Part shown: positions 17,754-56,265 of the stretch, piece by piece
How positions within the stretch are numbered: the stretch's first letter is position 1
Layout: every line of letters starts with the position of its first letter
Sequence record: OR513085.1
Reading direction: 5' to 3' (one strand)
Length of the DNA stretch: 64,000 nt
Notes under the pieces: generated by a model
The model's database searches: none
Seen by the model: the letters and a program-made list of their open reading frames with translations, nothing else
What the model was told of the DNA's origin: nothing
Position numbers and translations under genes: made by a program

Positions 17754-18698
17754 ATGGACGTACAATATTTCAAACAATTAAAGCACATCTTACATAACGG
17801 AGTAAGCAAAGGGGACCGTACTGGGACCGGCACGAAGTCAGTTTTTGGCTACCAAATGAGATTCGATATGCATGACGGTTTTCCGTTGTCTACAACAAAA
17901 AAGACTCACTGGAAGTCGATAATGCATGAATTAGTTTGGTTCCTTAGAGGCGAGACTAATATCGGCTACCTTAAAGAAAATGGGGTAAGTATCTGGGATG
18001 AATGGGCTGATGAAAACGGTGACTTAGGCCCAGTTTACGGTAAACAATGGAGGTCATGGCCAAATCCTAATGGCGATGAAATCGACCAAATTAAGCAAGT
18101 AATTCATGACATTGAGCATAACCCGTATTCTCGCAGACACATTGTGACTGGCTGGAATCCTTCAGTTTTGCCAGACCCGTCAAAATCATTCGCAGAAAAC
18201 ATAGCTAATGGAAAGCAAGCTTTGCCTCCTTGTCACTTGCTATTCCAATTTGACGTACAGCCCATTGACTATATTATGGTTGATGGTGAGTATGCATATC
18301 ATTTTGAAGGTAAGTTACGCAAAACTGGAAAAACTAAAGCATCTGACTTAGTTTTGTTACCTCAAAACTTTTTGAATGTTCAGCTATACATGAGGTCGGT
18401 CGACACGGGTCTTGGGGAACCTTTCAATATAGCATCATATGCAGCGCTACTTCATATTATTGCACATTTTACTAAAACTCAGCCAGGTGTATTTGTGTTA
18501 AGTACAGGAGATACTCACATTTACAACAACCACATTGACAAAATAAAAGAATTGTTGACTCGTGACCCTAAAAAATACAAATTGCCTACAATCAAAATTG
18601 CACCGTCGCTAAAAGACATCGATGAACTTGAGTTTGATGATGTTATGATTGAAGGTTATGAGTCTTACCCTCACATTAAAATGGATATTTCAGTATGA
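17754..18698 (+). CDS. thyA: thymidylate synthase
   Basis: DRTGTGT, ELVWFL, RRHIV, PPCH, RSVD..LG.PFN (dUMP-specifying Asn), GDTHIY. Confidence 0.97.
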   Translation: MDVQYFKQLKHILHNGVSKGDRTGTGTKSVFGYQMRFDMHDGFPLSTTKKTHWKSIMHELVWFLRGETNIGYLKENGVSIWDEWADENGDLGPVYGKQWRSWPNPNGDEIDQIKQVIHDIEHNPYSRRHIVTGWNPSVLPDPSKSFAENIANGKQALPPCHLLFQFDVQPIDYIMVDGEYAYHFEGKLRKTGKTKASDLVLLPQNFLNVQLYMRSVDTGLGEPFNIASYAALLHIIAHFTKTQPGVFVLSTGDTHIYNNHIDKIKELLTRDPKKYKLPTIKIAPSLKDIDELEFDDVMIEGYESYPHIKMDISV

Positions 18699-28553: not shown

Positions 28554-28586
28554 AAAGCCTAGATTCTACAAAGAGTCTAGGCTTTT
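28554..28586 (+). terminator. intrinsic terminator
   Basis: AAAGCCTAGATTCT...AGAGTCTAGGCTTTT. Confidence 0.8.
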
Positions 28587-28767: not shown

Positions 28768-29154
28768 ATGACAAAATTATTCCAAGCAATCGAATCAGTA
28801 TATGTAACAGTAAATCACAAAGGCTTCCAATTCCAATTTAGTTACGATAACGCAAGTGGTATATACAACATGGTAGTCCTAGATGCAGTACAATATGTAG
28901 GCAATGTATTTGTTACTTTGGCTGAACTTAAGGAAGCTGGTAACTTTTCAAAATTTGCAGAGGCTATCGTAGATGACCAAAGAAACGATAATAGTTTTAC
29001 ATTGGTCAATGATGAAGGCGTTTTTGTAATTTTTCCAGAAAACGAACCAGATGAAGCTACTCAAACATATACAGGTTTTACTTGGGAAGAGGCTTTAGCT
29101 AAGCAGCAAACTCTTGACTATAAAACTACAATAACTTATGACATTAACCTTTAA
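28768..29154 (+). CDS. hypothetical early protein
   Basis: directly after promoter. Confidence 0.7.
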   Translation: MTKLFQAIESVYVTVNHKGFQFQFSYDNASGIYNMVVLDAVQYVGNVFVTLAELKEAGNFSKFAEAIVDDQRNDNSFTLVNDEGVFVIFPENEPDEATQTYTGFTWEEALAKQQTLDYKTTITYDINL

Positions 29155-29485: not shown

Positions 29486-30622
29486 ATGAAAAACATTTTA
29501 ATTGCTAAACCTAGCAACGACATTTACATTAAAAATCGTGACGACCGTAGCAAAACAGATTTACAGTCATCAGAGATTTTAGCATTCATAAAAGCTATAA
29601 ACTACACAGCATTAGTAACACAGCCAGGCTTTAGATCAGATGCTAAAATTTACTTAGTCAATTCATTTACTACCTGCATGACTAACAATATTGCATTAGC
29701 TACAGATTCGTCATTGAAGTCTAAGCTACACAATGTTAGTCAGCAATCTTGGGAAGGCCAGGCTGCCATTGACGAAGTTAAGTCAAATTTTACAAGCAAG
29801 GATGTTTTCTTTATTTTCTGCGGATTATGGGACCTTGCTAAAATTCAAAACATACAAATAATTGAATTTGCTAAACATTTTCCAGGGAAAGTTTATTATG
29901 TTCAAAATGACTTGCGTTTAGATATGCCGGATGACTTAAAGCCTTACGTTGACAAAATCCTTACACAGGCTACTAAAAACAATGAAGCTAATGGCAGAGA
30001 ATATATGGCGTTAGACTTCTTGCCAGTTTTCTACATTGAGCAACAAATGCAAGTTCCTCACGAATATGATATTGCTGTACCATTTATGAACTGGACTGAC
30101 ATGGGCGAATATAGAAGGCGTAACATACTTTCATTGATTCGTGGCTATGCTAGAGAGGACATAAAACGACTTATTATAGGGCCTAAGGAACAAATTGTTG
30201 AATTGCATATACAAGGTTCGTTTATATTTCAAAAAGGCTGTACATTTTTACCGACAGTAAAACATAATGAACTTGTAAAGACTATGCGAAAGTCTAAAGC
30301 ATCTTACATTATTTCCGAACAGATTTACATCAAAAATGGCCTAACACCTAACAGGGTTATGGAAGCTTTGCTTTCAGGAGTAGTTCCTATAGTAGAATCT
30401 AACACACTAGATTCGTTCAATCCTGACATTATTTCAATGTTTGGAGGTTATTTTTACTATGACCATACTTGTCTAAGTGGTAGCATAGACTTCAATGAAG
30501 TAATTGATGGGCGATCATTATACGAGCAACAGCAACTTACTGCAAGACTGCATACTGATTGCGAAGTTCGTTGGAAAGTGCTTAAATACATAACTGATAA
30601 CTTTGCAAAATTTGTAATATAA
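29486..30622 (+). CDS. DNA beta-glucosyltransferase-like glycosyltransferase (GT-B), paralogue 1
   Basis: VYYVQNDLRL (T4 BGT YYLFTDIRL, catalytic Asp), KILTQA (KVISQG), NRVMEALLSG (LRVWETMASD). Confidence 0.7.
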   Translation: MKNILIAKPSNDIYIKNRDDRSKTDLQSSEILAFIKAINYTALVTQPGFRSDAKIYLVNSFTTCMTNNIALATDSSLKSKLHNVSQQSWEGQAAIDEVKSNFTSKDVFFIFCGLWDLAKIQNIQIIEFAKHFPGKVYYVQNDLRLDMPDDLKPYVDKILTQATKNNEANGREYMALDFLPVFYIEQQMQVPHEYDIAVPFMNWTDMGEYRRRNILSLIRGYAREDIKRLIIGPKEQIVELHIQGSFIFQKGCTFLPTVKHNELVKTMRKSKASYIISEQIYIKNGLTPNRVMEALLSGVVPIVESNTLDSFNPDIISMFGGYFYYDHTCLSGSIDFNEVIDGRSLYEQQQLTARLHTDCEVRWKVLKYITDNFAKFVI

Positions 30623-30629
30623 TAGCTAT

Positions 30630-31367
30630 ATGTCAATTAACAAACAAAATTCGTTGCGTTACGATAAAAACGCATTAGGAAAACAGCCGGCAATAGACCG
30701 GCTTTCCTTTCAATTCGGTAAAATACTGACCTCCACACTACTAATCATTTTAGTAATGGTTACGTTTTTGATAGGAATTTCTGTACACTTGGCTGATGTT
30801 TTCGGCTCTTGGTATCTTGCAGTAGGTATGCAGGCAGTTATCTTAATTGCATCTACAAACTCTGACATCTTACCAACTGTAAAAATTGGTAAAGGTACAT
30901 TGACAGTAATACCATTTGTAATGTCTTTCTTTATGGCTTGGTACATTTTCATATCCTTTGACGGCCTAAAAGTTGAGCCTTGGGGAGTTGACTTTTACAC
31001 GGCATTATCAAAGTCAATTGGTATTGCTGCAACCGAATATATGTTTTCTTACCTTTTTACATTTAGGTTCAATAAATTTATGAATGACTTAAATGGCTTA
31101 AAGAAGTCTGAGGCTGATGCTAAAATTTCAGACCTTGCTGATGAACAAGAATTTAAACGTCAGATGGCTAAGTTTGCCGAGGAGTCTAAGCCTACAAGCA
31201 TAATAAACGCTAATGTGCGTCAGACTCCTATTAGCATAGCTTCGGAATTAGTATCAGAACATCCTATGGAAGCGCCTAATTCACTGCCAAAAATTGTAGT
31301 ACCTGAAGCTAAACCTGTTAAACCTCAGCAAATTAGACCTACTGGACAAACTAACAAAATGCTATAA
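30630..31367 (+). CDS. multi-pass membrane protein with P-rich cytoplasmic tail
   Basis: about 4 hydrophobic segments. Confidence 0.7.
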   Translation: MSINKQNSLRYDKNALGKQPAIDRLSFQFGKILTSTLLIILVMVTFLIGISVHLADVFGSWYLAVGMQAVILIASTNSDILPTVKIGKGTLTVIPFVMSFFMAWYIFISFDGLKVEPWGVDFYTALSKSIGIAATEYMFSYLFTFRFNKFMNDLNGLKKSEADAKISDLADEQEFKRQMAKFAEESKPTSIINANVRQTPISIASELVSEHPMEAPNSLPKIVVPEAKPVKPQQIRPTGQTNKML

Positions 31368-31370
31368 AAC

Positions 31371-31544
31371 ATGAAAATACCTACAAATCCGCTACGTAGA
31401 ATTATTTCTGCAGGCACTAAAGTTACAATTGACGATAATGGCTGCTATGATGTAGTCAGACAATCTAACAATTTTGAATATACTTGGGTCACTGATGGCA
31501 AGTCTACCTGGGAAGTTAGAACTTTACGAATAGCCTTAATTTAG
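31371..31544 (+). CDS. 57-aa hypothetical protein (not in ORF track)
   Basis: MKIPTNPLRRII...LRIALI fills the gap exactly. Confidence 0.5.
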   Translation: MKIPTNPLRRIISAGTKVTIDDNGCYDVVRQSNNFEYTWVTDGKSTWEVRTLRIALI

Positions 31545-31586
31545 TATAATACACACATGCAATTCAATAATACACAAGACAAAATC

Positions 31587-32888
31587 ATGGCAAAGCAAAA
31601 AAACAAAATTTTCATACTTAAAATAGGTTCGTTTATGAGGCCGGAGGGCGATACATCGTCGATAGGTCTGATAACCAAGGAACCTAGTAACTTCGCAAAG
31701 GTTTTAGTTGACACTGTAGGCGATGACTTTGAAATTGTACTAGGCTCAGACAAACATATTGTTGATGTTGACAATAGCCTAACATACATAAACATTGAAC
31801 GTGACGGTAGGTTTTTTGCCAATGACATGAAGCCAGGTGATATCCTGCTAATTTGGCAAGGAGTTTACTTGGACCAAGAACATCATCCGCATATTACTGC
31901 ACACTACGAGTTTATCAACGAACTACAAAAACGTTCAGATGCAGGAACTATCAAGCAATACTTTATGATGACCGACACTAGAGTTCCTTTGCTTAATATA
32001 GTTGACTATGTTAAGTCTAAATTTACTCCTGGCGAATTTGCTTCAAAGTATATGGATGAACATGCTATTGACTTTTTATGCGATACGTCTAGGTTTGACA
32101 TTGATACTGAACAAATTGTTATGCTTACTCAAGCTTACAAAACTGCATTTTTACAAAAGGACTTGGCTGACGGTTTAGTTGAATGTAATAGCTACTACCA
32201 AGGTTTTGAATACAAAAAATACAAAACAATTTGTCACTTACCTATGCATTGCATGCCGCTTATAACGCATACTGTAGATAATTCATTTCCGTACTTCAAT
32301 TCTACAAACATGCCTAAGCATGACATGGTATTCACAGTACAATCGCTAGGATATTTCAACGACTACAGAATGGAACGTTTCCTTGAACTTGTAGCACATC
32401 CTAGCATTTCAACAAATTTTGATGTTGCAGTTTATGGAAAACATAACCGCAAGGCATACAACAAATTGTTTGACTATGTAGAAGCTAATGATACTACTGG
32501 CCATGGAGTTGTTAGTTTACCAAAAATGCTAGGCCCAGTTAAGTTTGACTATATGAAGTACATTCTTAACCAGGCGCAATATAATATGTGCATTTCAGAA
32601 GGTCCTTACGTTAAGTACGATTTATTGCCAAACAGGATTTTTGAATCATTCGCATCCGGTACTTTACCTTTGGTCGATATAGACATTGTACAAACTACTT
32701 CACAAGTTTCATTCAGATGGCTAATGTCAGCAAACAATAAATTCCTAGTCGGTAATACTGATGATGTTGTAGAAGCTTTACGTGGTCATAGCCAAGGCGA
32801 AGTTAACGGGTTTAAAAACGATATCCAAGCATTTATGCAATCTGCACTTACAAACTTTTACGCAGAAATTAAAGACTATTTTTCATAG
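31587..32888 (+). CDS. DNA beta-glucosyltransferase-like glycosyltransferase (GT-B), paralogue 2
   Basis: QYFMMTDTRVP, VMLTQA, NDYRMER, NRIFESFASGTLPLVD; start 31587 or 31557. Confidence 0.75.
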   Translation: MAKQKNKIFILKIGSFMRPEGDTSSIGLITKEPSNFAKVLVDTVGDDFEIVLGSDKHIVDVDNSLTYINIERDGRFFANDMKPGDILLIWQGVYLDQEHHPHITAHYEFINELQKRSDAGTIKQYFMMTDTRVPLLNIVDYVKSKFTPGEFASKYMDEHAIDFLCDTSRFDIDTEQIVMLTQAYKTAFLQKDLADGLVECNSYYQGFEYKKYKTICHLPMHCMPLITHTVDNSFPYFNSTNMPKHDMVFTVQSLGYFNDYRMERFLELVAHPSISTNFDVAVYGKHNRKAYNKLFDYVEANDTTGHGVVSLPKMLGPVKFDYMKYILNQAQYNMCISEGPYVKYDLLPNRIFESFASGTLPLVDIDIVQTTSQVSFRWLMSANNKFLVGNTDDVVEALRGHSQGEVNGFKNDIQAFMQSALTNFYAEIKDYFS

Positions 32889-32890
32889 CA

Positions 32891-32926
32891 ATTTTGGCAA
32901 AAACTTTTAAAAGTTTTTGCCAAAAT
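32891..32926. repeat. perfect 36-bp palindrome abutting an early promoter
   Basis: ATTTTGGCAAAAACTTTT/AAAAGTTTTTGCCAAAAT. Confidence 0.9.
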
Positions 32927-37422: not shown

Positions 37423-40400
37423 ATGAGTATCAAAATTTATCACTCAGCAGATGTCCAAGTGAACTGTGCTGGGAAACACTCGAATCGGTACAACGAACAT
37501 GTTTACATGCTAACCCAACAATCTAGCACAGTTATTAACGAAGGTTATGACTTGGCAGTTTTTGTTGGCGACATGTTTGAAAGGGCAAATACTACCGACA
37601 CCGAGAAATCACTTTTAGTCAACCATCTAATAAAGCCAATTTTGGATGCAGGCATTCCAATTTTCTGGACTGATGGTAACCATGACTTAAAACAATCAAA
37701 ATTTTCGTTTGACCCAGGTGATGGTTCAAAGAAAGATGAGGTTGGCGTACTTAGAGCGTTGACCGACTTTATTGATTCTCCGCTACTTACATATGGCGAG
37801 GAAACTGGCTTCTACAACATGGGAGAGTTTAAAGGTCAAAATGTCATTATTGCTTGTTGGTCGCATAAAGCTAAATATTCAACCGAAGCCAAATTCAAAT
37901 CGCCTTGGCTAGAATTGGATGCTAAACCTGCAGAAAAGCAAGAATCTATCCGAGCAGCCTTGGCTAATTCAATTGTTTTTGATACTTACCACGACCCGGT
38001 ACGTAACGTTAAGAACTTTGATGGCAAAGTTGTACGAGGAGATAACGAAGCACGAACTGATATTTCCGAGTTCCTTGGAGACTTCTGTTTGATGGGGGAT
38101 ATTCATATGCCAAGCATTATGAGAACTCCAAACAGAGCTGCAGACTTCTTTGCGTCTTACCCATCATCACCAATGATTTTATATTTCGGTGAAGGCGACT
38201 ACTACACAAACTTTACGTTAGTCGATGAACGTAACCCACATCACGGATTCAATCATGTGGTAGTGCATTCCAAAACTTCAAAGGAAGTTACGTTTGTACC
38301 TTACAATCAACATACAACTAGGCATACTATAACAATTACTGAGGACTTTGATGTCGATGCAATTCCTGATTTTGAATTAAAGAATGCTTCTGCTATCAAC
38401 AACATGGTACGTTTAGTAATGACTACGTTTGAAGGAATTGAACAAGTCGACAAACTAATCAAACACTTACAAAACAAATACACAGTAAGTATTGATATTC
38501 AGACAAAAGTCAATCAAACGCTTACTCAAAACAGTCTAGATGAAAGCTTCAATATTTCCGACCTTTCAGACAAGGACTACTTAATGAAAATTGCAACTCA
38601 GTGTATTACTGACAAAGTCAATGCTACAAGGGATTCCGATGAATACAAGCTACGACTAATCGAGGACACTGTGAAAGTTTTTGAATCTGCGCTTGACAAT
38701 ACACAATACGTAGTACCTCTAAGCAAATACAAATTCCAAACGTTAGACTTGCATAATTTCATGCCAATCAATGAACTTAAATTGGATTTTGACCAAATTC
38801 GTAACTTAGGTTCAATTGTGAAAATCAACGGTAACAATGGTACTGGAAAAACTACAATTTACAAAGGGTTACTTTGGATTGCTACTGGCAAAATTGACTG
38901 GAGACAATCTGAAAATAAAAGCAAACGAAATGCTCTGGACTATTTCAATGACAAAGCATGGGACAAAGATACTACTGCAGGACGTTTAGTTGTTACGCTT
39001 AACGACGAACGTATTGAAGTTTCAAGGTCAATCACTAGACTTTGGGCAGCTAAGACATCTGACACTCATAAAAAATCTGTTAACTGGAAGCACCATGTTT
39101 GGAGAGTTGATGAAAACCTGGAAGTTAAAGTTAATGGTGAAGTACTTGCAGAAAAGGATGCTGACGAAAAGTTACTAGAAGTTTTTGGTGACTTCTACAA
39201 ATTCCAAAGCATGCACGTAGTTAACCAGGCACACTTAGATCACTTGTTGCTAAACTTACCACTCGACAAGTTAATCGACTATATTCTAAAAAGCATTGGA
39301 TTTACTGTAGCCGAGCAACTTAAAGCTAACTTAGAGCCTGAACGTTCTAGGCTATTTAAGGACTTAGTTAAGCATGGTAAGGATATTGCAGGAATCAACA
39401 TTGACATTGGAATTAAGGAAACTGAAATAGTACAGACTGAGGAAAACATTGCTGATGTAGAAAAGCAAATTGACCAGGCTACTGACGAAATTTCAAAAGT
39501 CGGAACTATGCTTAACCAACTTAATGCTAAGCTGCATGTAGTTTCTGACGAAGATAAAGCTAACGTTAGCAAAAAGGAACAAATAGTTGAGCAAATGTCA
39601 GGCTTACAGCTGGCAATCAAGGAGACTCAATACAAAATTGACAATCCTGTTTGGTCAGAGGAAAAGCAACAAGGCTTAGCTGCTTTGAAAGCTGAGCAAG
39701 TTAAGCTTAATGGAGACTTACTTACAGGAACTTCCAGAATTTCAGAGTTGCAATCTACTAACGTTATACTTAACAACACAGTATTTACTGCATCTGGCGA
39801 AATTACGAATATCAATGTAGCACATGCTAATGAAAAGGCTCAGGCTAAGTCAGACTTACAAAAAGCTAAGGCCGATAATTTAGCGACGATTGCAAATTCT
39901 ATAAATCAAATTTTAGATGCAGTTAATGCAGAAGCTAAAGAGCGTAATGCCGAAGTTGGTGAAAAGCTTGATGAACTTAACGAAGCTATACGTGCAACCA
40001 AGGAAAGCAAATCACAATATGAATCTGCTGTAGCTAAGTTAGAAGGGCAAATTGAATCTGAACAAAAACAAATTGACAAACTAAATTCTGGTCAATGTCA
40101 AATTTGTGATAAGTCATATGCCGAACTGCCTACAGTTAAAGCAGAGATAGCTAAGCACCAGGCTACTATTGATACTGCAAATGCTAACATTACTACAATT
40201 AAAGGGCATATTGAAAAGTTTGAAGCTACTATAGCAGCTAACGAACAATCTATAGTTACTACAGAAGCTTTACGTAAAGAAGTAGTTACGCAACTTACGC
40301 AACTTACGCAAGAGCAATTAACTGCTAACATTACTCAGCTTACAGAAATTAAACGTTTGACTGACGAAAATAAGGATGAGTACATACAAACAAAATCCGA

Positions 40401-41403
40401 TGCTATTGATAAACTTGAACTTTCAGAAGGCCAGTTAGCCAGAGTTAACGAATTGAAGCTAACAATTGCAGATGCTGAAGCTAAAGTCAAAGCTAACAAT
40501 GATGCTGTCGAAACGTTACGACTTTCTATAGCAGAGCTTCCTAAAAAGCTAGAAAACGTTCAGCTTGAAATTGCTAATGACGAAGCATTCCGTGAAGCCA
40601 ATACATCAGAAGCACTTTACAAATTGCTGCTAACTCAAAAAGGTTCAGTAGAATCTGGCGAAAAGTTGTTAGAACGAATTGTAGTTGCTGAGAAAAACCT
40701 ACAAGACAATGAGGTAGTAGAGGCTGAAATTAAGCTACAGGAATCGAAGACTGACGAATACAAGAAGGCTTTAAATTTGGCAAATAGCGAAGCGGCTAAA
40801 CTACGTATACGTTTAACTACGTTGAAAACTCAGAAAGCCGGGCTTGAGTCAGTTATTGACGAAATCAAGGACTATGAGCATGCTAACAATATTTGGTCAA
40901 TGTTTATTCACACAATCGGAATCAAAGGATTGAACAAATACGTCTTCGATACTATTGCATTGCAAATTAATGCTGAGTTAAATTCGTTACTTGATGGTCT
41001 TAACTACAGGATTTTCTTTGACTTAGGTGATGGCTATGCATTGAAAATGGTTGACTTACTTGGTAACGCATCTATACGTAACCTATACACAATAGGCGGT
41101 ATGGAATCGACGCTAGGCTCATTGGCATTGCTAACAGTCATAAAGTCCAAGACAATCAAAAATAACGGAGACTTTATGTTCCTTGATGAAATTACCGGAA
41201 AGCTTAACAATTCCAAGGACACTAAAGGAACTGATGCTACAAACAAAGACTACCACTTTGAGTTCTACACAATTTTGAAAAAGCTATCGCAGAATATCAA
41301 CATTTGCATAGTTGACCATGCATTACCAATTGAATGGTTTGCCTCAGTTATCGACATTGTTAAGTACGACAACGGAGTATCTGACATTGTACAGTCAGTT
41401 TAA
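37423..41403 (+). CDS. fused Mre11/SbcD (gp47-like) nuclease and Rad50/SbcC (gp46-like) ATPase
   Basis: phosphoesterase motifs SADVQ, GDMFE, GNHD, GDIH; Walker A GNNGTGKT; long coiled coil with CQIC zinc hook; signature-like IGGME; Walker B FLDE. Confidence 0.9.
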   Translation: MSIKIYHSADVQVNCAGKHSNRYNEHVYMLTQQSSTVINEGYDLAVFVGDMFERANTTDTEKSLLVNHLIKPILDAGIPIFWTDGNHDLKQSKFSFDPGDGSKKDEVGVLRALTDFIDSPLLTYGEETGFYNMGEFKGQNVIIACWSHKAKYSTEAKFKSPWLELDAKPAEKQESIRAALANSIVFDTYHDPVRNVKNFDGKVVRGDNEARTDISEFLGDFCLMGDIHMPSIMRTPNRAADFFASYPSSPMILYFGEGDYYTNFTLVDERNPHHGFNHVVVHSKTSKEVTFVPYNQHTTRHTITITEDFDVDAIPDFELKNASAINNMVRLVMTTFEGIEQVDKLIKHLQNKYTVSIDIQTKVNQTLTQNSLDESFNISDLSDKDYLMKIATQCITDKVNATRDSDEYKLRLIEDTVKVFESALDNTQYVVPLSKYKFQTLDLHNFMPINELKLDFDQIRNLGSIVKINGNNGTGKTTIYKGLLWIATGKIDWRQSENKSKRNALDYFNDKAWDKDTTAGRLVVTLNDERIEVSRSITRLWAAKTSDTHKKSVNWKHHVWRVDENLEVKVNGEVLAEKDADEKLLEVFGDFYKFQSMHVVNQAHLDHLLLNLPLDKLIDYILKSIGFTVAEQLKANLEPERSRLFKDLVKHGKDIAGINIDIGIKETEIVQTEENIADVEKQIDQATDEISKVGTMLNQLNAKLHVVSDEDKANVSKKEQIVEQMSGLQLAIKETQYKIDNPVWSEEKQQGLAALKAEQVKLNGDLLTGTSRISELQSTNVILNNTVFTASGEITNINVAHANEKAQAKSDLQKAKADNLATIANSINQILDAVNAEAKERNAEVGEKLDELNEAIRATKESKSQYESAVAKLEGQIESEQKQIDKLNSGQCQICDKSYAELPTVKAEIAKHQATIDTANANITTIKGHIEKFEATIAANEQSIVTTEALRKEVVTQLTQLTQEQLTANITQLTEIKRLTDENKDEYIQTKSDAIDKLELSEGQLARVNELKLTIADAEAKVKANNDAVETLRLSIAELPKKLENVQLEIANDEAFREANTSEALYKLLLTQKGSVESGEKLLERIVVAEKNLQDNEVVEAEIKLQESKTDEYKKALNLANSEAAKLRIRLTTLKTQKAGLESVIDEIKDYEHANNIWSMFIHTIGIKGLNKYVFDTIALQINAELNSLLDGLNYRIFFDLGDGYALKMVDLLGNASIRNLYTIGGMESTLGSLALLTVIKSKTIKNNGDFMFLDEITGKLNNSKDTKGTDATNKDYHFEFYTILKKLSQNINICIVDHALPIEWFASVIDIVKYDNGVSDIVQSV

Positions 41404-44256: not shown

Positions 44257-45237
44257 ATGTCAATTTTCCAGCCTAGAAAACACTATAAACCATTTGAATA
44301 TCCGCAAGTACTACAATTCACAGAAGCCATGCAAAAAGGCTTCTGGGTACATTCTGAAGTAGATTTTACTGCGGATGTTCAAGACTTCCATTCACAACTT
44401 GAACCATTTGAACAAAATGCAGTTAAGAATGCTTTACTTGCAATCGCACAAATCGAAGTTTCAGTTAAAACATTTTGGGGTAACCTTTACAACTTATTTC
44501 CTAAGCCTGAACTTAACGGTTTAGGCGCTACTTTTGCCGAATGTGAATTTCGTCATTCGGAAGCATACTCTAGGCTACTTGAAGTTCTTGGCTTCAACGA
44601 CGAATTTGAAAAAGTTCTTCAAGTACCTGCAATTGCTAAACGTATTGCACAGCTTAACTTGGCTAGAACTGACTATCCTAACTTAACAGAGGAACAGGCA
44701 AAAACAGTTAACTTACTTATGTTTGCTGTGCTTGTTGAGAATGTTTCGTTATTTTCACAATTCGCTACGGTACTATATAAGTCCCGATTCTACGGTGTCA
44801 TGAAAAATGTCGCAAATATAATAAATTGGACCTCAATTGATGAGGGATTGCATGGACAGGCCGGGCTAATGCTAATCAATATAATAAAGGAAGAGCACCC
44901 GGAAATTTTTACTGATGACCTTAAAGCCGAGATCGTTAACAAAATTCGCGAGTCTATCGACATAGAAGCCGAAATTAATGCTTGGATTTTTGAGCAGGGC
45001 GACTTTGAAAAATGTACACAGGCCGACTTGTTAGCTTACATGAAGCAAAGAGTTAACGATAGTATGGAAGTTATTGGCTTTGACAAACCATTCTCAGCAG
45101 ATGAAATAGTTTTGGCTAAAAATTTAAAATTCTTTGAGGAGGAGGTGTATGCTAATTCTTTGGATGACTTTTTTGCCCGCAGACCGGTTGACTATTCTAA
45201 GCATGACAAATCAATTACTGCCAATGACTTATTCTAA
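44257..45237 (+). CDS. nrdB: ribonucleotide reductase class I beta subunit (Flavobacterium-type, class Id-like)
   Basis: AQIEVSVKTFW, ECEFRHSEAY, VENVSLFSQF, IDEGLH, DFFARRPVDY. Confidence 0.95.
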   Translation: MSIFQPRKHYKPFEYPQVLQFTEAMQKGFWVHSEVDFTADVQDFHSQLEPFEQNAVKNALLAIAQIEVSVKTFWGNLYNLFPKPELNGLGATFAECEFRHSEAYSRLLEVLGFNDEFEKVLQVPAIAKRIAQLNLARTDYPNLTEEQAKTVNLLMFAVLVENVSLFSQFATVLYKSRFYGVMKNVANIINWTSIDEGLHGQAGLMLINIIKEEHPEIFTDDLKAEIVNKIRESIDIEAEINAWIFEQGDFEKCTQADLLAYMKQRVNDSMEVIGFDKPFSADEIVLAKNLKFFEEEVYANSLDDFFARRPVDYSKHDKSITANDLF

Positions 45238-47200: not shown

Positions 47201-48424
47201 ATGTACAAATTCATATACGTCTGGTATAACAAAGCCAGATTTTTTGACAAAACTAAAGACTTACCTTGGATTTATATCGGCATGCACAGAGGGCATATTG
47301 ACGATGGTTATATATCGTCTTCAATTTACTTAAATACTGAAATGCAACAAGATACTGGCAATAATTGGCAGCGTATAATTATTAAGCGTTACGAAGATTC
47401 CGTAAGCGTAGAAGAAGTTTATGCACATGAATGCGCATTGATACGTGCAGCATTTAAACGATATGGCTTTAGCAAAGTACTTAATAGAACTGCAACATTT
47501 AATAAGCCAACATCAAAGGGAAAAGTAAGACTTATAGTACCTGATTCTAATGGTGCTATGATTTGGGTGCCTAAGGCAAATAAAGAAGCATACTTGGAAC
47601 TTGGATATGCTACATTAGCAGGTAAATATAAAACTATTGGTAAGCTTAAAATAACTAACGGCGAAGAAAATAAATTAGTAACAAAAGAAGCTTTTGCTGA
47701 AATGGACCAAAGCATTTGGCGCATTGGTCAGACTAACCGAGTTGAATTTGGAAAAGCTATAAACAAAGATGGTCAAGTAAGATATGCAAAAAGTCATGAA
47801 CTAGATTCATTTTTAGCAGAAGGCTGGACATTAGGAATAGGTAAACGACCAAAATCTCCTAAAGCTGGCGACTCTATGCGCGGTAAAGTTGCTATAAATA
47901 AAGATGGACGTAATAAGTATGTAATGCCTGAAGAACTTGACACTTTTTTAGCAGATGGTTATATTAGAGGTACTGTAAAATGCCCTACTGAAAATCTAAT
48001 TTGCGTGAACAAAGATGGTAAAAACAAATTTATAATGCATGAAGAGGTCGATGCGTTTTTAGCAGATGGCTGGACATTAGGTAACACTAAACGAGGTAAG
48101 CGTAGACTTATGAATAATGGCGAGCATGCTAAACATGTACCAAATGAAGAGGTCGATGCGTTTTTAGCAGATGGTTGGGTATACGGCAAAATAATAAATG
48201 CTGATGCAGAACGCAAAGTATGCATCAACAAAGACGGCAGTACTAAATTCGTATCGCCATCCGTAATTGAAGCATTCTTAGCAGATGGTTGGAAGTATGG
48301 CAGCCCTAACAAAGGCTCACGAAAACTTATGACTAAAGATGGTGAGCGTAACAGGTATATAAATGAATCTGACATAGAAGCATTCTTAGCAGATGGCTGG
48401 ACATTAGGCAATAAAAAAGTATAA
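47201..48424 (+). mobile_element. free-standing Seg-like GIY-YIG endonuclease with about 6 C-terminal repeats
   Basis: FIYVW...IYIGMH.G..DDGY.SSS; repeated NKDG..K.V...E.DAFLADGW..G. Confidence 0.8.
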
Positions 48425-48468: not shown

Positions 48469-50190
48469 ATGCAAGAACGAAATGCACCTTCGTGGATAAA
48501 CGAAGAATCACTGGCTATGCTTAACAGAGGTTATTTATTGCCAGGAGAAACTGTAAACGATGCAATTGACAGAATATGTAAAGCTGCGGCGTCTTATTTT
48601 GTAGGGACTAAATACGAAGCAGATGCTTATAGTAAATTCCGCAGAAACATTGAAAATAACTGGATATCATTCAGTTCACCAGTTTGGTCCAACATGGGAA
48701 CTAATCGAGGCTTACCTATATCTTGTTTCAATACACATATTCCAGATGAAATGTTTGGCATAGCAAATAAACATACAGAGAATGTTATGATGTCTAAGCT
48801 AGGAGGAGGTACTTCATCATACTGGGGCGAGCTAAGAGCCAGAGGTACTAACATTACAGATAACGGAAAAGCTGGCGGCCCAGTACCATTCATGAAAATG
48901 TTCGACACTATGATGACTGTAATTTCCCAAGGAGGTGTTAGAAGGGGAAGCCATGCAGCTTACTTAGATATCGACCATGCAGATATTGAAGAGTTCTTGC
49001 AAATTAAAGAAATCGGCAACGATATACAAAACCTATTCACTGGTGTTAACGTTCCGGACTACTGGATGAATGACATGATTAATGGAGATACTAAAAAGCG
49101 TGAAATCTGGGCTAAAGTGTTAGAGTCAAGAAAAACTAAAGGATTGCCTTACATTTTCTTTACTGACAACGTTAACAAAAATAAACCGCAAATTTACAAA
49201 GATCGTAAGGCAGATATTAAGTCTTCAAATTTATGCGCCGAAATAATGTTGCCATCTACGTTGACTGAATCATTCGTCTGCTGTCTTTCATCAATCAACT
49301 TAATTAAGTGGGATGAAATTAAAGATACTGATGCTATATTCTGGGCCATATTGTTCCTAGATGCAGTTATGCAAGAATTTATTAACAAAACTAAGGATAT
49401 GCCAGGTATGGCCGAATCCAGAGCATTTGCAGAAAGACATAGAGCCATCGGCTTAGGAGTTCTAGGCTATCATGCATACTTGCAGTCTAAAATGGTAGCA
49501 TTTGATTCTTTTGAGGCTACTAGAATCAACAACAGTATATTTAAACAATTGGGCAAGCAAACTAAAGAAGCTTCCGAAGAAATTGGAAAAGAACTTGGAT
49601 TTGCTCCAATATTCCTAGAAGGCGAAACTACTGATATTCCTAGAAGGCACACTACGACCATGGCGTTGCCCCCTACGACATCATCTTCAAGTATAAGTCA
49701 AATTTTCTATAAAAACGAAGATGGTTCAACAGAGGCCTTTGGTAATTCCCCTGGGATAGAGCCGTATTCATCAAATTATTACAAAGCCGGTCTTGCAAAA
49801 GGCAATTTTATGAGAACTAACGGATTCTTAAAACGATTGCTGGTAGAAAAAGGCCTGGACAATGAAGACATTTGGAGAGGCATAATGCTTAACCATGGCT
49901 CAGTTCAGCACATAAACGAACTATCCGATCATGAGAAAAATGTTTTCAAAACGTTCAAAGAAATTTCGCCGTCAGCTATTATAACACAAGCAGCTCAGCG
50001 ACAAGTTTACGTAGATCAAGGTCAATCTTTGAACTTGCTAATTCCTACAGAAATGAGCGTCAAAGACGTCAATCGTCTATACATCGAAGCCTGGGAAAAA
50101 GGCGTTAAAACATTGTACTACCAAAGATCATCGTCAGTTTCCAAGGAAATGATGACTGGCTTTGTAACTTGCAATAGCTGTGAAGCTTGA
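48469..50190 (+). CDS. nrdA: ribonucleotide reductase class I alpha subunit, no ATP cone
   Basis: FSSPVW, PISCF, GGGT, SNLCAE, CCLSS, PPTTSSS, KTLYYQR, C-terminal CNSC. Confidence 0.95.
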   Translation: MQERNAPSWINEESLAMLNRGYLLPGETVNDAIDRICKAAASYFVGTKYEADAYSKFRRNIENNWISFSSPVWSNMGTNRGLPISCFNTHIPDEMFGIANKHTENVMMSKLGGGTSSYWGELRARGTNITDNGKAGGPVPFMKMFDTMMTVISQGGVRRGSHAAYLDIDHADIEEFLQIKEIGNDIQNLFTGVNVPDYWMNDMINGDTKKREIWAKVLESRKTKGLPYIFFTDNVNKNKPQIYKDRKADIKSSNLCAEIMLPSTLTESFVCCLSSINLIKWDEIKDTDAIFWAILFLDAVMQEFINKTKDMPGMAESRAFAERHRAIGLGVLGYHAYLQSKMVAFDSFEATRINNSIFKQLGKQTKEASEEIGKELGFAPIFLEGETTDIPRRHTTTMALPPTTSSSSISQIFYKNEDGSTEAFGNSPGIEPYSSNYYKAGLAKGNFMRTNGFLKRLLVEKGLDNEDIWRGIMLNHGSVQHINELSDHEKNVFKTFKEISPSAIITQAAQRQVYVDQGQSLNLLIPTEMSVKDVNRLYIEAWEKGVKTLYYQRSSSVSKEMMTGFVTCNSCEA

Positions 50191-50547: not shown

Positions 50548-50754
50548 ATGAAAACATTTAGCCAGTTTATCACCGACTGCATGGTCAGTTTCGGCAACTT
50601 CGTTCTGTCAAAAGAACGTGAGGATAATGTTTCCGAAGAAGTCAAACGATCAGTTACGGATGCTGACTTGGCTAATTGGAAAGAAAAGAACAACATAACG
50701 GACAATAACAACTCAATAGAAAATCACGAACCTGGGAATGGCATCAAACTTTAA
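50548..50754 (+). CDS. small hypothetical protein
   Basis: operonic ORF. Confidence 0.55.
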   Translation: MKTFSQFITDCMVSFGNFVLSKEREDNVSEEVKRSVTDADLANWKEKNNITDNNNSIENHEPGNGIKL

Positions 50755-52108
50755 TAACGATCAAAACGGAAATGGAGGGCTTGGCTCTGATGGAATGTAT
50801 CACGATGGACATATGTATGTTTCCGATGAAATGCTAAATTGCGGACCTGTAGGAGGCCAGCTACAAGGCGGTCAATGGAGACACTTCAAAACATTTGACC
50901 CTAACTCAAACGGTTCATTGCCTTGCGGTAACTGTGGCAATTCACACTGTCATCATTGTCATACTTACTTACAAAATGGTAAATGGTCAAATGACTATCA
51001 TGGCTACAATCATCATGGATATTCGCCTGACCAAACTACAAGGTACATGATGAAATATCATGGAGGAAATTATGCACAGCTTAAAAATCTAAACAAAATT
51101 GTCAAAGATCGTAAAGCGACAAAAGTTATTTACATGGATTTTGATGGCATATTCTCCGGAACTATGGCATACAATAAGGACGAGAAATTCATGAAGACTG
51201 CGCAATTTTCTGCACGTTATGCTATTGAAATGCTTAGATTCTACGGATTTGAAGTTAACATTATAACAGGCGACCAATCTGGTTCAGGGTTTGACATTAC
51301 TAACAAAATTTTGGAAAGAATTCCGGTTAATTCTGTACAATACGTATCTGGTCATGACAAATTCATGCATATGTCTGCCAACCACGACATAACTAAAATA
51401 TTCTATGTCGGCGATGATCTTTTCGACTTAGGAATGGCTGCTGGTCGTAGAACTCCTATTCTTATGACTACAGCAAATGCTATGTGGGCTTTGAAAAATA
51501 TGGCACATTACACGGCACTTTCAGGTTCGCATGATTATTCAGTGTTTGACATTGCGTCGGCTATACTTATGTCTTTTGAAATTGACCCTATTGCATATGC
51601 TGCCAAGACTAGAAGAAACAAAATTGCTACAGACCTTGCGGCTAACATAAACTTTAGAATCGGAAATAACATAGCATTCACTGAAAATTCGCAAAACTGG
51701 ACTGCTAATTACTTACCAATTTTAGTTTCTGACTATGGAGTTAATCCTGATCACATAGGACTTACTACTCCTTATGTTAAGCCAGACAACATGAAGTCTG
51801 TAGATGACATTTATATTGCTACTAACTTAGATTATTTTGTAGACAACTATGCATCATTAAGGCATAACAGGACTTATTTCTTACTACCTAGAGAAATTGG
51901 CCTAGGTGATGTTAAGTTTATTGAAACATTAATGGCACTGGACAAACTACTAGCATCGCCACTAATTGAATGGACTATATTAACTGACCACCTTTCTGAA
52001 AATTCCAAGCCTATGCTTTATGCAATTTGTATGGAGAAAAAGCTATACAATGTACTTTCTGCGACAGGCTTTACTGACCCGCAGATATCACCTACTAGCG
52101 GAGGCTAA
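50738..52108 (+). CDS. KdsC/YrbI-type HAD sugar-phosphate phosphatase with His/Cys/Gly-rich N-terminus and extra C-terminal domain
   Basis: DFDGIFS (motif I), IITG, HDK, YVGDDLFD; N-terminal CGNCGNSHCHHCH. Confidence 0.75.
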   Translation: MASNFNNDQNGNGGLGSDGMYHDGHMYVSDEMLNCGPVGGQLQGGQWRHFKTFDPNSNGSLPCGNCGNSHCHHCHTYLQNGKWSNDYHGYNHHGYSPDQTTRYMMKYHGGNYAQLKNLNKIVKDRKATKVIYMDFDGIFSGTMAYNKDEKFMKTAQFSARYAIEMLRFYGFEVNIITGDQSGSGFDITNKILERIPVNSVQYVSGHDKFMHMSANHDITKIFYVGDDLFDLGMAAGRRTPILMTTANAMWALKNMAHYTALSGSHDYSVFDIASAILMSFEIDPIAYAAKTRRNKIATDLAANINFRIGNNIAFTENSQNWTANYLPILVSDYGVNPDHIGLTTPYVKPDNMKSVDDIYIATNLDYFVDNYASLRHNRTYFLLPREIGLGDVKFIETLMALDKLLASPLIEWTILTDHLSENSKPMLYAICMEKKLYNVLSATGFTDPQISPTSGG

Positions 52109-54328: not shown

Positions 54329-54934
54329 ATGCTAGTACTTTTTGAAGGTCCGGATGGTTCCGGTAAATCCACACTAATTGCCAAAATAAAGCAAAAGTTT
54401 CTGCCGGAAGCTTTAGTATGTAAGCGTAATTCGTTCAAAACATACAATCCGGAGGAATCAAAATACCCAACTAATATCGACTTAACGTTATCCGCACCAT
54501 GGGACTGGAGATTTTTCTTGGAAATGCATGAAGCTAATTTCAAGTCACATAATTTCCTTTGCGACAGATCATTCATTACACAAAGAGTTTACCAGGATGC
54601 TTTAGGCCCTGAAACTAAAACTCCTGAATTGGATGCTACTTTGTTAGCTTACGAACATGAAGTTTCGCAAATTCCTCACCTAGTAGTTTATTGTAAGCGT
54701 AAAACTCTACGTAACGATGGCGACTTTGCTGCAATGGATAACAAAGAACTTGATATTGTTGCAAGGTACGAGGAATACATTGACAATGAATGTACTTTGA
54801 ACAAAATTGTCATTGACACTGAAAAACTTGACATCGACTCTTGTACTGCTTTGATAGTCGGTGCTATCCAGGCAGCTTACAATCACTATGTAGAAAACAA
54901 ATCTGGTAAAGCTATTAACATATGGGCAGATTAA
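54329..54934 (+). CDS. deoxynucleoside monophosphate (thymidylate kinase-like) kinase
   Basis: FEGPDGSGKST P-loop, CDRSFIT..VY; likely start ATG 54329. Confidence 0.85.
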   Translation: MLVLFEGPDGSGKSTLIAKIKQKFLPEALVCKRNSFKTYNPEESKYPTNIDLTLSAPWDWRFFLEMHEANFKSHNFLCDRSFITQRVYQDALGPETKTPELDATLLAYEHEVSQIPHLVVYCKRKTLRNDGDFAAMDNKELDIVARYEEYIDNECTLNKIVIDTEKLDIDSCTALIVGAIQAAYNHYVENKSGKAINIWAD

Positions 54935-56265
54935 ACAAACAGCCTGGGGGTCTTCTTGACTCCCAGTTTTCCGCAATACTTTCACAAAAAACTAACAGAA
55001 CAATAATCGAAGCCAATTCGGTTCATGATGCTTACGTTCTAGGACTTCATGCATTAGCTAACGGTAGCCAGGATATCGAAGTTAAGGAAGGAGTCAAAAC
55101 AAAAAACTTACACAATGCAATAATTGAACTTACTCCTCAGTATTCCGAGGAAAATCCAATGGGCTACTTTAGTAAGCGAGTTTTTTGTAAAAAGCGTAAC
55201 CTGACTAACAAAATTCAAAATGCTGAGTTTGCTTGGTATATGACGCTAAACTCCGAAGTTGACGCTATCACACCTTACATCAAAAATTGGAATAAGTTTT
55301 CTGATGACGGCATTCATGTTAATTCAAACTACGGAGCTATCTGGGCTGAGCAAATGCCAGGAGTCATACAAAAGCTGGTTTTTGATAAGTATACTAGGCA
55401 GGCTTCGTTAGCAATTTATTCAAGAGACATGGCTAACATGCATGACTCCAAGGATATAAATTGTACATTGTCAGTAGACTTCAAAATTTTACCAAGAGCT
55501 ATTGGCGGAGGTGATGAACTTCATATGACTGTAATGATGAGGTCTAACGATATTGTTCACGGTCTACCAATTGACATGTTCTGTTTCGGTACGCTTTTGG
55601 AATTGTTACGTAACGAACTAGCTACGTACTACGAAAACTTATACTTAGGAACTTACACGCATATTGCAACATCATTGCATATCTACGAAAATGCTTACGA
55701 TAAGTTAGAAGGCATTGAACTTATGGAGCCTGAACGTATTCAAAAGAAAAACGAAATCACAGCAATTCCGCCGGCAGTAACTTACATGAACTTCTGGGTA
55801 CATCAACCTGCATATATCATGGGCATCCTGGATAAAAAACATTTTGCCAAGTTCACCAAGAACTATGATATGTTCTTTTCGTTCAATTTCATTAACTCGT
55901 TAGTTGAGGAGCTTTATATCGACAAGCATAAAAACTACACTAACTTGATTAAAATTGAGGACTTAATGCCAGTATTCGATGAAGTTGTAGCATACTGTGA
56001 TGAGTATGACATTACATTACCTGCACAAGAATATGCTAAGGACAAAGTAAAAATGTTTGATTTACTTTATGACTGTGCTAAAATAGCAGGAACACAAATG
56101 ATGTCTACTGCATTTTTGTCAACAGTTATACTGGCTAGGGATGCTGCACATTTTAAACAATCATTCACGCATATAAGCGGTTTTGCATCTAGCAAATTCC
56201 CGATAACTAGATATTGTGCATACCAGGCAGTACTTAATTATGTTCTAAACGCACCGAAAGACTAG
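54922..56265 (+). CDS. dCMP hydroxymethylase/hydroxylase-like enzyme (T4 gp42-like, thymidylate-synthase fold) with C-terminal extension
   Basis: AEFAWY, VNSNYG, DINCT (catalytic Cys), MRSNDIVHGLPID (Asp at the dCMP-specificity position), SLHIY. Confidence 0.85.
   Translation: MGRLNKQPGGLLDSQFSAILSQKTNRTIIEANSVHDAYVLGLHALANGSQDIEVKEGVKTKNLHNAIIELTPQYSEENPMGYFSKRVFCKKRNLTNKIQNAEFAWYMTLNSEVDAITPYIKNWNKFSDDGIHVNSNYGAIWAEQMPGVIQKLVFDKYTRQASLAIYSRDMANMHDSKDINCTLSVDFKILPRAIGGGDELHMTVMMRSNDIVHGLPIDMFCFGTLLELLRNELATYYENLYLGTYTHIATSLHIYENAYDKLEGIELMEPERIQKKNEITAIPPAVTYMNFWVHQPAYIMGILDKKHFAKFTKNYDMFFSFNFINSLVEELYIDKHKNYTNLIKIEDLMPVFDEVVAYCDEYDITLPAQEYAKDKVKMFDLLYDCAKIAGTQMMSTAFLSTVILARDAAHFKQSFTHISGFASSKFPITRYCAYQAVLNYVLNAPKD

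Follow-up and report, generated by a model that had tools for sequence, protein, structure and literature searches.

Two anciently diverged relatives of T4 beta-glucosyltransferase form a candidate DNA-glycosylating pair in Chryseobacterium phage MA9V-2

The DNA considered here is a stretch of 64,000 nucleotides from sequence record OR513085.1, referred to in the following as the window. It carries two genes, ORF1 and ORF2, that encode divergent relatives of the beta-glucosyltransferase (BGT) of phage T4. We propose, with a probability of roughly 60%, that their products are an active, soluble, inverting pair of glycosyltransferases (GTs) of the GT-B type, that the two are non-redundant, and that they act on the phage's own cytosine-modified DNA. 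The family to which both belong is a small, deep-branching sister of T4 BGT; we infer below which substrate (DNA or nucleotide), base and sugar are involved and in what order the two enzymes act. Between positions 29000 and 33500, the window matches Chryseobacterium phage MA9V-2 (OR513085.1) at 100% identity and MA9V-1 at 83.8%. MA9V-2 is a jumbo phage with C. indologenes MA9 as its host; its genome comprises 218,539 bp, and window positions are converted to record positions by adding 62000. The two genes are:

29486..30622, + strand: ORF1 (MA9V2_112), 378 amino acids, annotated as hypothetical; ORF1-like ("type 1") BGT-like GT-B glycosyltransferase
31557..32888, + strand: ORF2 (MA9V2_115), 443 amino acids, annotated as hypothetical; ORF2-like ("type 2") BGT-like GT-B glycosyltransferase

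A sequence-only reading of the window had pointed to two BGT-like genes close together, and both are present at these positions. The motifs on which that reading relied were also found. The catalytic Asp motif is NDLRL at residue 141 of ORF1 and TDTRV at residue 139 of ORF2, matching TDIRL at residue 99 of T4 BGT; the S/TQ motif is LTQA at residues 159 and 190, respectively (ISQG at 135 in BGT); and the R..E helix that binds uridine diphosphate (UDP) reads NRVME at 289 and NRIFE at 359 (LRVWE at 268 in BGT). These matches are more than chance, because the motif positions coincide with invariant or nearly invariant columns of a 27-sequence family alignment. Such columns (ORF1/ORF2) include E30/E42, D142/D140, R144/R142, Q161/Q192, R210/R271 and Y281/Y351, and further invariant columns are P288-N289-R290/P358-N359-R360 and E293/E363. 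The two proteins are nevertheless as different from each other as had been claimed: BLASTP aligned only a C-terminal stretch of 50 residues (34% identity, E 5e-7), and their identity in the family alignment is 18%. Neither has a transmembrane or hydrophobic segment or a signal-like region, and both are predicted to be soluble.

Conventional searches returned little. A word-indexed protein search matched, besides the MA9V-1 orthologues, only one metagenomic protein and gp180 of the Sphingomonas jumbo phage PAU, and neither ORF1 nor a 7-sequence alignment retrieved relatives when IMG/VR was scanned. phmmer searches with ORF1 and ORF2 against the PDB gave only noise. The PHROG family phrog_32512, of unknown function, was matched by ORF2 at E 1.4e-14 and by ORF1 at E 1.2e-3. 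An exhaustive profile search, started from ORF2 and two close relatives, yielded 25 representatives among 1.84 billion proteins. T4 BGT belongs to Pfam family PF09198 and CAZy family GT63; PF09198 was matched by 0 of the 25.

When the profile of these 25 sequences was compared with the PDB, T4 BGT (1bgt_A) was the only significant match (E 4.5e-5), with profile positions 23–403 lying on chain residues 16–347, end to end. An hhalign comparison of the family profile with the T4 BGT sequence (from AF158101) gave a probability of 96.9% (E 1.5e-10, 279 columns). ORF1 scored 111 bits against a family hidden Markov model (HMM) built without it, and aligned with the ORF2 family profile at 99.7% (E 1.8e-26, 294 columns). 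In hhalign, a two-sequence ORF1 alignment did not match the single T4 BGT sequence significantly (probability 1%), so the link between ORF1 and BGT requires either the family profile or structure.

AlphaFold modeling followed by superposition on T4 BGT had been suggested as a check, and AlphaFold2 models were built on the family alignment. The ORF2 model had a mean local confidence (pLDDT) of 87.8 and a predicted template modeling score (pTM) of 0.88; the ORF1 model had a pLDDT of 79 and a pTM of 0.83, with one low-confidence segment at residues 61–84. In Foldseek, the top six matches of the ORF2 model were all T4 BGT (E 9e-13 to 1e-10), as were the top five of the ORF1 model (E 3e-11 to 6e-10). 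By VIA-align, ORF2 superimposed on T4 BGT with Z 31.8 and a root-mean-square deviation of 2.8 Å over 342/351 residues; the T4 alpha-glucosyltransferase (AGT) came next at 21, and other GT-B enzymes reached at most 18.7. For ORF1, the score against BGT was Z 25.7 over 307 residues, followed by T4 AGT at 19.5 and other GT-B enzymes at 18 or less. The arabinosyltransferase structure of phage HY126 (9iqz) scored Z 16.5 against ORF2. In the ESM Atlas, both proteins neighbour PF09198 clusters. Both models thus have the GT-B fold, with T4 BGT as the best match by a wide margin, and we consider the fold and a specific kinship with BGT established for both ORFs.

In the known BGT structures, D100 is the general base; R195, R269 and E272 hold the UDP, which is also bound by S189 and R191. 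In the profile-to-BGT alignment, the family-invariant columns fall on BGT E22, D100, R102, Q137, R195, R269 and E272. Both genes are intact and under strong purifying selection: relative to MA9V-1, the ratio of nonsynonymous to synonymous substitution rates (dN/dS) is 0.10 for ORF1 (85.7% amino acid identity) and 0.05 for ORF2 (91.7%), at a dS of about 0.85–0.97. The sequence-only reading had named a catalytically dead copy beside one with standard BGT activity only as an outcome that would count against it. There is no sign of a dead copy, since the Asp general base is present in both proteins, as are the Arg and Glu that bind the nucleotide, and both are under purifying selection, and judging by these residues both copies are probably catalytically active.

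It could also be that only one copy is catalytic and that the other serves as a non-enzymatic scaffold, specificity or regulatory subunit of a heterodimer. Two GTs are needed for a single arabinose addition in phage DLP3 (PMC13326640), and the pairing of the two types is conserved, as described below. ORF1 would be the natural candidate for the inactive partner, as it lacks an equivalent of BGT S189, contains the low-confidence segment 61–84 and is without the helical insert of about 30 residues found in both ORF2 and BGT between the catalytic Asp and the TQ/SQ motif. However, no family-invariant residue is lost from either protein, the Asp general base and the R..E helix included, and dN/dS is low for both. 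We therefore consider such a division of labor improbable.

The family tree suggests that the two genes have different roles. A maximum-likelihood tree of 29 members separated six ORF1-like from 23 ORF2-like rows with a split support of 97/96, and the same split was obtained with T4 BGT as outgroup; the names type 1 and type 2 were given after the first tree had been seen. On the ORF1-like side stand the ORF1s of MA9V, P0016 and P0027, together with two contig genes. One of these two is a 345-residue ORF1-like gene immediately upstream of the ORF2-like P0015 in a 27-kb metagenomic contig (L015); in another contig (L014), a truncated ORF1-like gene lies immediately upstream of the ORF2-like P0008. 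The order ORF1-like then ORF2-like is thus common to three lineages (MA9V, L015 and L014). An approximately unbiased (AU) test rejected forcing MA9V ORF1 and ORF2 into one clade (p 2.4e-7). Because the tree splits the two types and three lineages carry the ordered pair, the duplication must be old, and a pair that derives from an old, retained duplication argues for two different jobs. The suggestion of two non-redundant activities, whether by sequential addition, different donors or different contexts, was made originally from the presence of two BGT-like genes and gains support from these recurrently paired lineages. No third member was found in the 215.5 kb of MA9V-2 that were scanned, in which ORF1 and ORF2 are the only family members, and none of the genes in positions 1–215,500 (of 218,539) of the MA9V-2 record is annotated as a glycosyltransferase.

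The sequence-only reading had assumed 5-hydroxymethylcytosine (5hmC) as the acceptor, and MA9V-2 has a gene that could supply it. The following features of the window bear on the acceptor base:

17754..18698, + strand: MA9V2_094, 314 amino acids; canonical thymidylate synthase ThyA (Pfam TS 349.6 bits; PDB ThyA E 1e-90), with Leu143, Asp169 and Asn177
54329..54934, + strand: MA9V2_145, 201 amino acids; P-loop nucleotide kinase directly upstream of MA9V2_146, candidate (hm)dCMP kinase
54922..56265, + strand: MA9V2_146, 447 amino acids; divergent thymidylate synthase (TS) homologue, predicted dCMP 5-hydroxymethylase

MA9V2_146 scored 49 bits against Pfam TS, and its best PDB match was the CMP hydroxymethylase MilA (E 3e-8), with 9iqu/9iqc behind it at 5e-5. 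It was aligned with T4 gp42, RB69 gp48, ThyA and other phage homologues, and the residues at three positions were compared in E. coli ThyA numbering:

MA9V2_146: 143 Asp, 169 Asp, 177 Asp
T4 dCMP hydroxymethylase gp42: 143 Asp, 169 Asp, 177 Asp
RB69 gp48 (5-hydroxy-dCMP synthase): 143 Glu, 169 Asn, 177 Asp
PAU gp182: 143 Glu, 169 Asn, 177 Asp
CP-51 homologue (uracil-type): 143 -, 169 Asp, 177 Asn
MW202897 homologue (uracil-type): 143 -, 169 Asp, 177 Asn
ThyA: 143 Leu, 169 Asp, 177 Asn

According to Lee et al. (PMC13326640), N177D is the cytosine determinant, an acidic residue at 143 goes with non-methyl products, and D169N is diagnostic of 5-hydroxy-dCMP synthases. The motif at position 169 is RSND in MA9V2_146, RSQN in RB69 gp48 and RSNN in PAU gp182. 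With Asp at all three positions, MA9V2_146 is therefore predicted to be a dCMP hydroxymethylase, making 5hmC the acceptor. We considered whether MA9V-2 makes 5-hydroxycytosine like RB69, with which it shares sugar genes, and ranked the idea lower because MA9V2_146 lacks the diagnostic D169N. On these signatures, 5hmC ranks first as the predicted acceptor, and 5-hydroxycytosine is a less likely alternative. MA9V2_094, as a canonical ThyA, was ruled out as the hydroxymethylase.

The upstream gene, MA9V2_145, matched PHROG thymidylate kinase families (E 2.5e-16) and Pfam AAA_28; a kinase adjoining the TS homologue is also found in RB69, DLP3 and RL38J1 (PMC13326640). A MazG-like pyrophosphatase is encoded elsewhere in the MA9V-2 genome, in which a dCTPase of the T4 gp56 type was looked for and not found. 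MA9V2_146 has, in addition, a C-terminal extension of about 180 residues without a family match, and the uracil-type homologue gp100 of Bacillus phage CP-51 has an extension that is partly alignable with it.

The relatives of the pair bear on the same question. PAU (NC_019521) encodes two family members, gp179 and gp180, with 309 and 294 bits. They form a cluster (L011 10823–19468) in which gp179 and gp180 precede, in this order, gp181, gp182 (the TS homologue), gp183 and three genes for dTDP-sugars, and the block upstream of gp179/gp180, encoding a single-stranded DNA-binding protein (SSB) and a UvsW helicase, is syntenic with MA9V-2. Homologues of PAU gp171, gp181 and gp183 were looked for in MA9V-2 and not found. 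In constant-field electrophoresis, PAU DNA moves 26% more slowly than the DNA of lambda, and it carries a modified cytosine of undetermined nature (PMC5646251). As the GT pair, the D169N-type gp182 and the dTDP-sugar genes cluster together, we predict that this base is a glycosylated 5-hydroxycytosine, possibly with a deoxyhexose. The PAU cluster thus resembles MA9V-2 in the GT family, in the SSB/UvsW block and in its link to a bulky cytosine modification, but differs in three respects: gp179/gp180 are a younger duplication inside the ORF2-like side of the tree, gp182 has the D169N signature, and the sugar genes are of the dTDP-sugar type.

In L015, two TS-family genes, one a ThyA and the other bearing the hydroxymethylase signature, lie together with the GT pair downstream of a UvsW-like helicase. 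A ribulose-phosphate 3-epimerase gene is located between the two TS-family genes (L015 16491–17183), a further pentose-phosphate enzyme beside base-modification genes. Contig L016 has the order MazG, GT (P0010), TS homologue. Taken at the level of the family, this gene context supports DNA as the probable acceptor. In contig L012, the gene at 1670–2941, directly after the ORF2-like P0005, encodes a protein of 423 amino acids with a faint Exostosin_GT47 match and no match to the family HMM; it may be an unrelated second GT.

These contexts also bear on the possibility that the acceptor is not DNA at all. The pair might instead modify a glycan or lipid of the host envelope, a protein of the virion or some small molecule, for instance in superinfection exclusion, which has been suggested for numerous jumbo-phage GT clusters. 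Both proteins are acidic to neutral, whereas T4 BGT is basic, and a membrane protein is encoded between the two genes; in other jumbo phages, clusters of GT and NDP-sugar genes have been read as surface-polysaccharide modifiers (PMC7824862), and about 65% of phage GT contigs have no neighboring base-modification enzyme (10.1101/2023.12.21.572611). On the other hand, the two closest structures are both T4 DNA glucosyltransferases, well above the lipopolysaccharide and teichoic-acid enzymes, and neither protein has a transmembrane segment or signal-like region. Family members recur beside TS homologues and MazG, PAU carries family members and has chemically modified cytosine, and the dCMP-hydroxymethylase-type enzyme of MA9V-2 has no other annotated or detected GT to use its product. 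Such an acceptor is accordingly an unlikely one for the pair.

We then considered the sugar donor. MA9V2_233, encoded outside the window, is an arabinose-5-phosphate isomerase with 31% identity to RB69 gp55 (E 1e-23) and a match to phrog_5670 at 1.5e-36; its PDB matches were 5uqi, 3etn and 2xhz, the first two of which are also listed in Table 1 of PMC13326640. Two genes beyond it, MA9V2_235 encodes a protein of 586 amino acids with an N-terminal NTP_transferase domain and a kinase-like C terminus, which is a full-length homologue of RB69 gp52:53 (AfhE; E 1e-33; phrog_4098 4e-70). Relatives of MA9V2_235 were found in 336 phage records (E to 8e-34), aligned over 97–99% of the length of MA9V2_235, almost all from Straboviridae-type phages and including RB69 and Serratia phage 92A1, both known arabinosylating phages (PMC13326640). 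MA9V2_235 is thus a predicted AfhE-like sugar kinase/nucleotidyltransferase. One further feature of the window may belong with these genes:

50738..52108, + strand: MA9V2_142, 456 amino acids; weak KdsC-like HAD sugar-phosphate phosphatase domain at residues ≈123–277

By phmmer, MA9V2_142 matched the KdsC structures 3n07 (E 0.0018) and 2p9j (0.0036), both weakly; it had no Pfam or PHROG match and no similarity to RB69 gp51. A role for it in sugar activation is possible, as a weak assignment. The GT4-like arabinosyltransferases of the Afh type include RB69 gp46:47 and DLP3 gp76/77/79. No homologue of the RB69 gp51 HAD phosphatase (AfhF) and no significant match to RB69 gp46 and gp47 were detected in MA9V-2 by tblastn.

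In RB69, DLP3 and HY126, the arabinose-5-phosphate isomerase, AfhE and the HAD phosphatase make UDP-arabinofuranose for arabinosyl-5-hydroxycytosine (PMC13326640); RB69 and DLP3 are without BGT homologues (Lee et al.). BGT-like GT-B enzymes of other phages put heptose or Kdo on 5hmC by using phage sugar-activation genes (Burke et al., 10.1101/2023.12.21.572611). Since MA9V-2 carries an arabinose-5-phosphate isomerase and an AfhE-like enzyme, the donor sugar may not be glucose, and a non-glucose donor is plausible because BGT-like GT-B enzymes with phage-supplied heptose or Kdo donors are known. We did not find the combination of a hydroxymethylase-type TS, arabinose-activation genes and BGT-like transferases described. 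As a tentative extension, possible and clearly less probable than the general proposal, the pair would consist of BGT-fold pentosyltransferases that put phage-made arabinose on 5hmC, perhaps building a chain of two sugars of which each enzyme adds one. Arabinosyl-5hmC had earlier been suggested for RB69, but that chemistry was later reassigned to 5-hydroxycytosine.

A plainer T4-like scheme is that both enzymes use host UDP-glucose to make glucosyl-5hmC and differ only in site preference or efficiency, like AGT and BGT of T4, while the arabinose genes serve elsewhere. It would agree with the nearest structure being that of a UDP-glucose enzyme, with the hydroxymethylase signature of the TS homologue, with the universal availability of UDP-glucose and with the distance of about 90 kb between the sugar genes and the GTs. 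Identity to BGT is only 13–16%, however, and BGT-like enzymes with heptose or Kdo donors are already known; family relatives adjoin sugar genes (the PAU dTDP-sugar genes, the L015 ribulose-phosphate epimerase), and the AfhE-like homologues are almost all from Straboviridae-type phages, including the arabinosylating RB69 and Serratia phage 92A1. We find this scheme doubtful, and somewhat less so than the alternatives in which only one copy is catalytic or the acceptor is not DNA.

The immediate surroundings of the two GT genes contain the following features:

28554-28585: terminator-like hairpin with a 14-bp perfect stem and a T-rich tail, which together with the hairpin at 32891-32926 brackets the block holding both GT genes
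30630..31367, + strand: MA9V2_113, 245 amino acids from the upstream ATG; predicted membrane protein with three hydrophobic segments
31371..31544, + strand: MA9V2_114, 57 amino acids; small ORF between the two GT genes
32891..32926, + strand: terminator-like hairpin with a 16-bp perfect stem and a T-rich tail, directly 3' of ORF2, from a consensus scan

The gaps between ORF1, the membrane ORF, the small ORF and ORF2 are 7, 3 and 12 bases. These short intergenic distances and the flanking hairpins are consistent with co-transcription, and the region 28.6–32.9 kb may be one transcription unit, the hairpins being pattern matches only. MA9V2_113 and MA9V2_114 had no Pfam or PHROG match. Both are kept in MA9V-1, the former at full length with 92% amino acid identity and a dN/dS of 0.05, and the latter with 91% identity and a dN/dS of 0.09. 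The annotated start codons of ORF2 and of the membrane ORF differ between MA9V-1 and MA9V-2. ORF2 probably begins in truth with the ATG at 31587 (M11), giving 433 amino acids, because the MA9V-1 orthologue and P0002 start there and residues 1–15 of the model are without regular secondary structure. The membrane ORF probably begins at 30630, as in MA9V-1, and not at the annotated position 30756 of MA9V-2.

Farther along the window, a gene for a "metallo-phosphoesterase" of 1326 residues is located at 37423–41403, and a Metallophos/SMC/AAA_23 protein of 1184 residues is encoded at the same position, directly after the GT pair, in L015, which suggests a conserved fused SbcCD-like nuclease in the MA9V-2/L015 phage group. 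The genes for the beta (44257–45237) and alpha (48469–50190) subunits of ribonucleotide reductase are separated by a GIY-YIG nuclease gene, likely a homing endonuclease (47201–48424), and by three small ORFs without annotated function. The gene for the family-B DNA polymerase, which lies outside the window, is annotated as two pieces, MA9V2_192 and MA9V2_196 (record 149314–155537; L005 33814–40037), which are separated by three genes, including one for a TnpB-family RNA-guided endonuclease.

Taken together, we propose the following pathway for MA9V-2. MA9V2_146 would make 5hm-dCMP, which the adjacent kinase would raise towards the triphosphate, while the MazG-like pyrophosphatase may deplete dCTP, and the phage polymerase would incorporate 5hmC. 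ORF1 and ORF2 would then transfer sugar from a nucleotide-sugar to the hydroxyl, with the Asp equivalent to BGT D100 acting as the general base and the equivalents of R195, R269 and E272 holding the nucleotide. Most likely, one enzyme would add the base-proximal sugar and the other would extend that sugar or serve a different subset of sites. Host UDP-glucose is a possible donor, and an NDP-pentose made by the phage (UDP-arabinose) is no less likely. The resulting bulky, neutral adducts would be expected to block host restriction and CRISPR nucleases.

A number of observations weigh against this pathway. No Pfam family matched ORF1 at E ≤ 1, ORF2 gave only a spurious IGPS match, and PF09198 was unmatched by both. 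BGT S189 has a counterpart in ORF2 (S263) and none in ORF1, and BGT R191 is not conserved in the family. In the tree, the AU test for the L015 pair was borderline (p 0.051), with long branches involved. The isoelectric points of the two proteins are 6.7 and 5.45, compared with 9.05 for T4 BGT, a poorer fit to a protein that binds in the DNA groove. MA9V2_146 is 22 kb and the sugar genes are about 90 kb away from the GT genes, whose linkage to them is therefore at the level of the genome and not of an operon; one of the genes between ORF1 and ORF2 encodes a membrane protein. In L016, the TS beside the GT is ThyA-like (Asn177). The pathway of the AfhE type has so far been described only together with 5-hydroxycytosine and transferases that are GT4-like (PMC13326640), a combination absent from MA9V-2, and the MA9V-2 genome paper makes no mention of glycosyltransferases, glycosylation, restriction or thymidylate synthase. 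The isoelectric points, the gene distances and the intervening membrane protein would also be compatible with glycosylation of the nucleotide, with one enzyme acting on an already attached sugar or, less likely, with a non-DNA acceptor.

The analysis proposes a function for two orphan genes, defines a rare BGT-sister family outside Pfam coverage and links this family to the cytosine modification of PAU. If arabinosyl-5hmC is indeed the product, the UDP-arabinose module would be compatible with either of the two base precursors and with transferases of an unrelated family, and the GT family described here would also explain the bulky modification in PAU. Glycosylated cytosines decide whether phages escape restriction enzymes, CRISPR nucleases and type IV systems, and they affect how therapeutic phages are sequenced and engineered. 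Both MA9V-1 and MA9V-2 are under development as biocontrol agents against a plant-root pathogen, and their genome papers list the GT genes as hypothetical.

T4 BGT itself is the closest point of comparison. Its GT-B architecture is matched along the entire chain, counterparts of E22, D100, R195, R269 and E272 are kept in both ORFs, and it likewise comes from a phage genome that also holds a dCMP-hydroxymethylase-type TS homologue. It differs in that MA9V-2 has two paralogues instead of one, that these share only 13–16% identity with it, are acidic to neutral and come from a family with no PF09198 match and no conserved R191, that ORF2 is about 90 residues longer, and that the MA9V-2 donor is possibly not UDP-glucose.

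More than one glucosyltransferase per genome is a feature of the T-even phages, in which T4 has an alpha- and a beta-glucosyltransferase and T2 and T6 have a transferase for a second sugar. These enzymes act on the same modified base to produce different linkages or a disaccharide (PMC13216743), much as we propose for MA9V-2. T4 AGT and BGT are, however, not close paralogues, whereas ORF1 and ORF2 are both BGT-like and stem from one old duplication.

The GTs that Burke et al. described from hypermodification clusters of metaviromes (GT53, GT66 and GT94; 10.1101/2023.12.21.572611) resemble the MA9V-2 pair by description: they are phage GT-B enzymes with T4 BGT as the best structural match and a catalytic Asp aligned to D100, they put non-glucose sugars (heptose, Kdo) on 5hmC with the help of phage sugar-activation genes, and GT-B contigs often carry TS homologues. 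In contrast, those of the enzymes that were tested belong to post-replicative clusters of the methyltransferase/TET type, whereas the route in MA9V-2 would be pre-replicative, by way of the TS homologue. With the Afh pathway of RB69, DLP3 and HY126 (PMC13326640), MA9V-2 shares an arabinose-5-phosphate isomerase, a full-length AfhE-like enzyme and a TS homologue with an adjacent thymidylate-kinase-like gene, and in that pathway, too, several GTs act on one base. MA9V2_146 nevertheless keeps Asp169, MA9V-2 has no GT4-like arabinosyltransferase or gp51 homologue by tblastn, RB69 and DLP3 have no BGT homologues, and the HY126 GT (9iqz) is only distantly similar to ORF2 (Z 16.5). In kind, the MA9V-2 pair belongs with the phage DNA glycosyltransferases that act downstream of a TS-family pyrimidine modifier and often occur several to a genome; the novelty lies in a rare BGT-sister family missed by current models, in the conserved pairing of ORF1-like and ORF2-like genes, and in their unusual mix with genes for UDP-arabinose.

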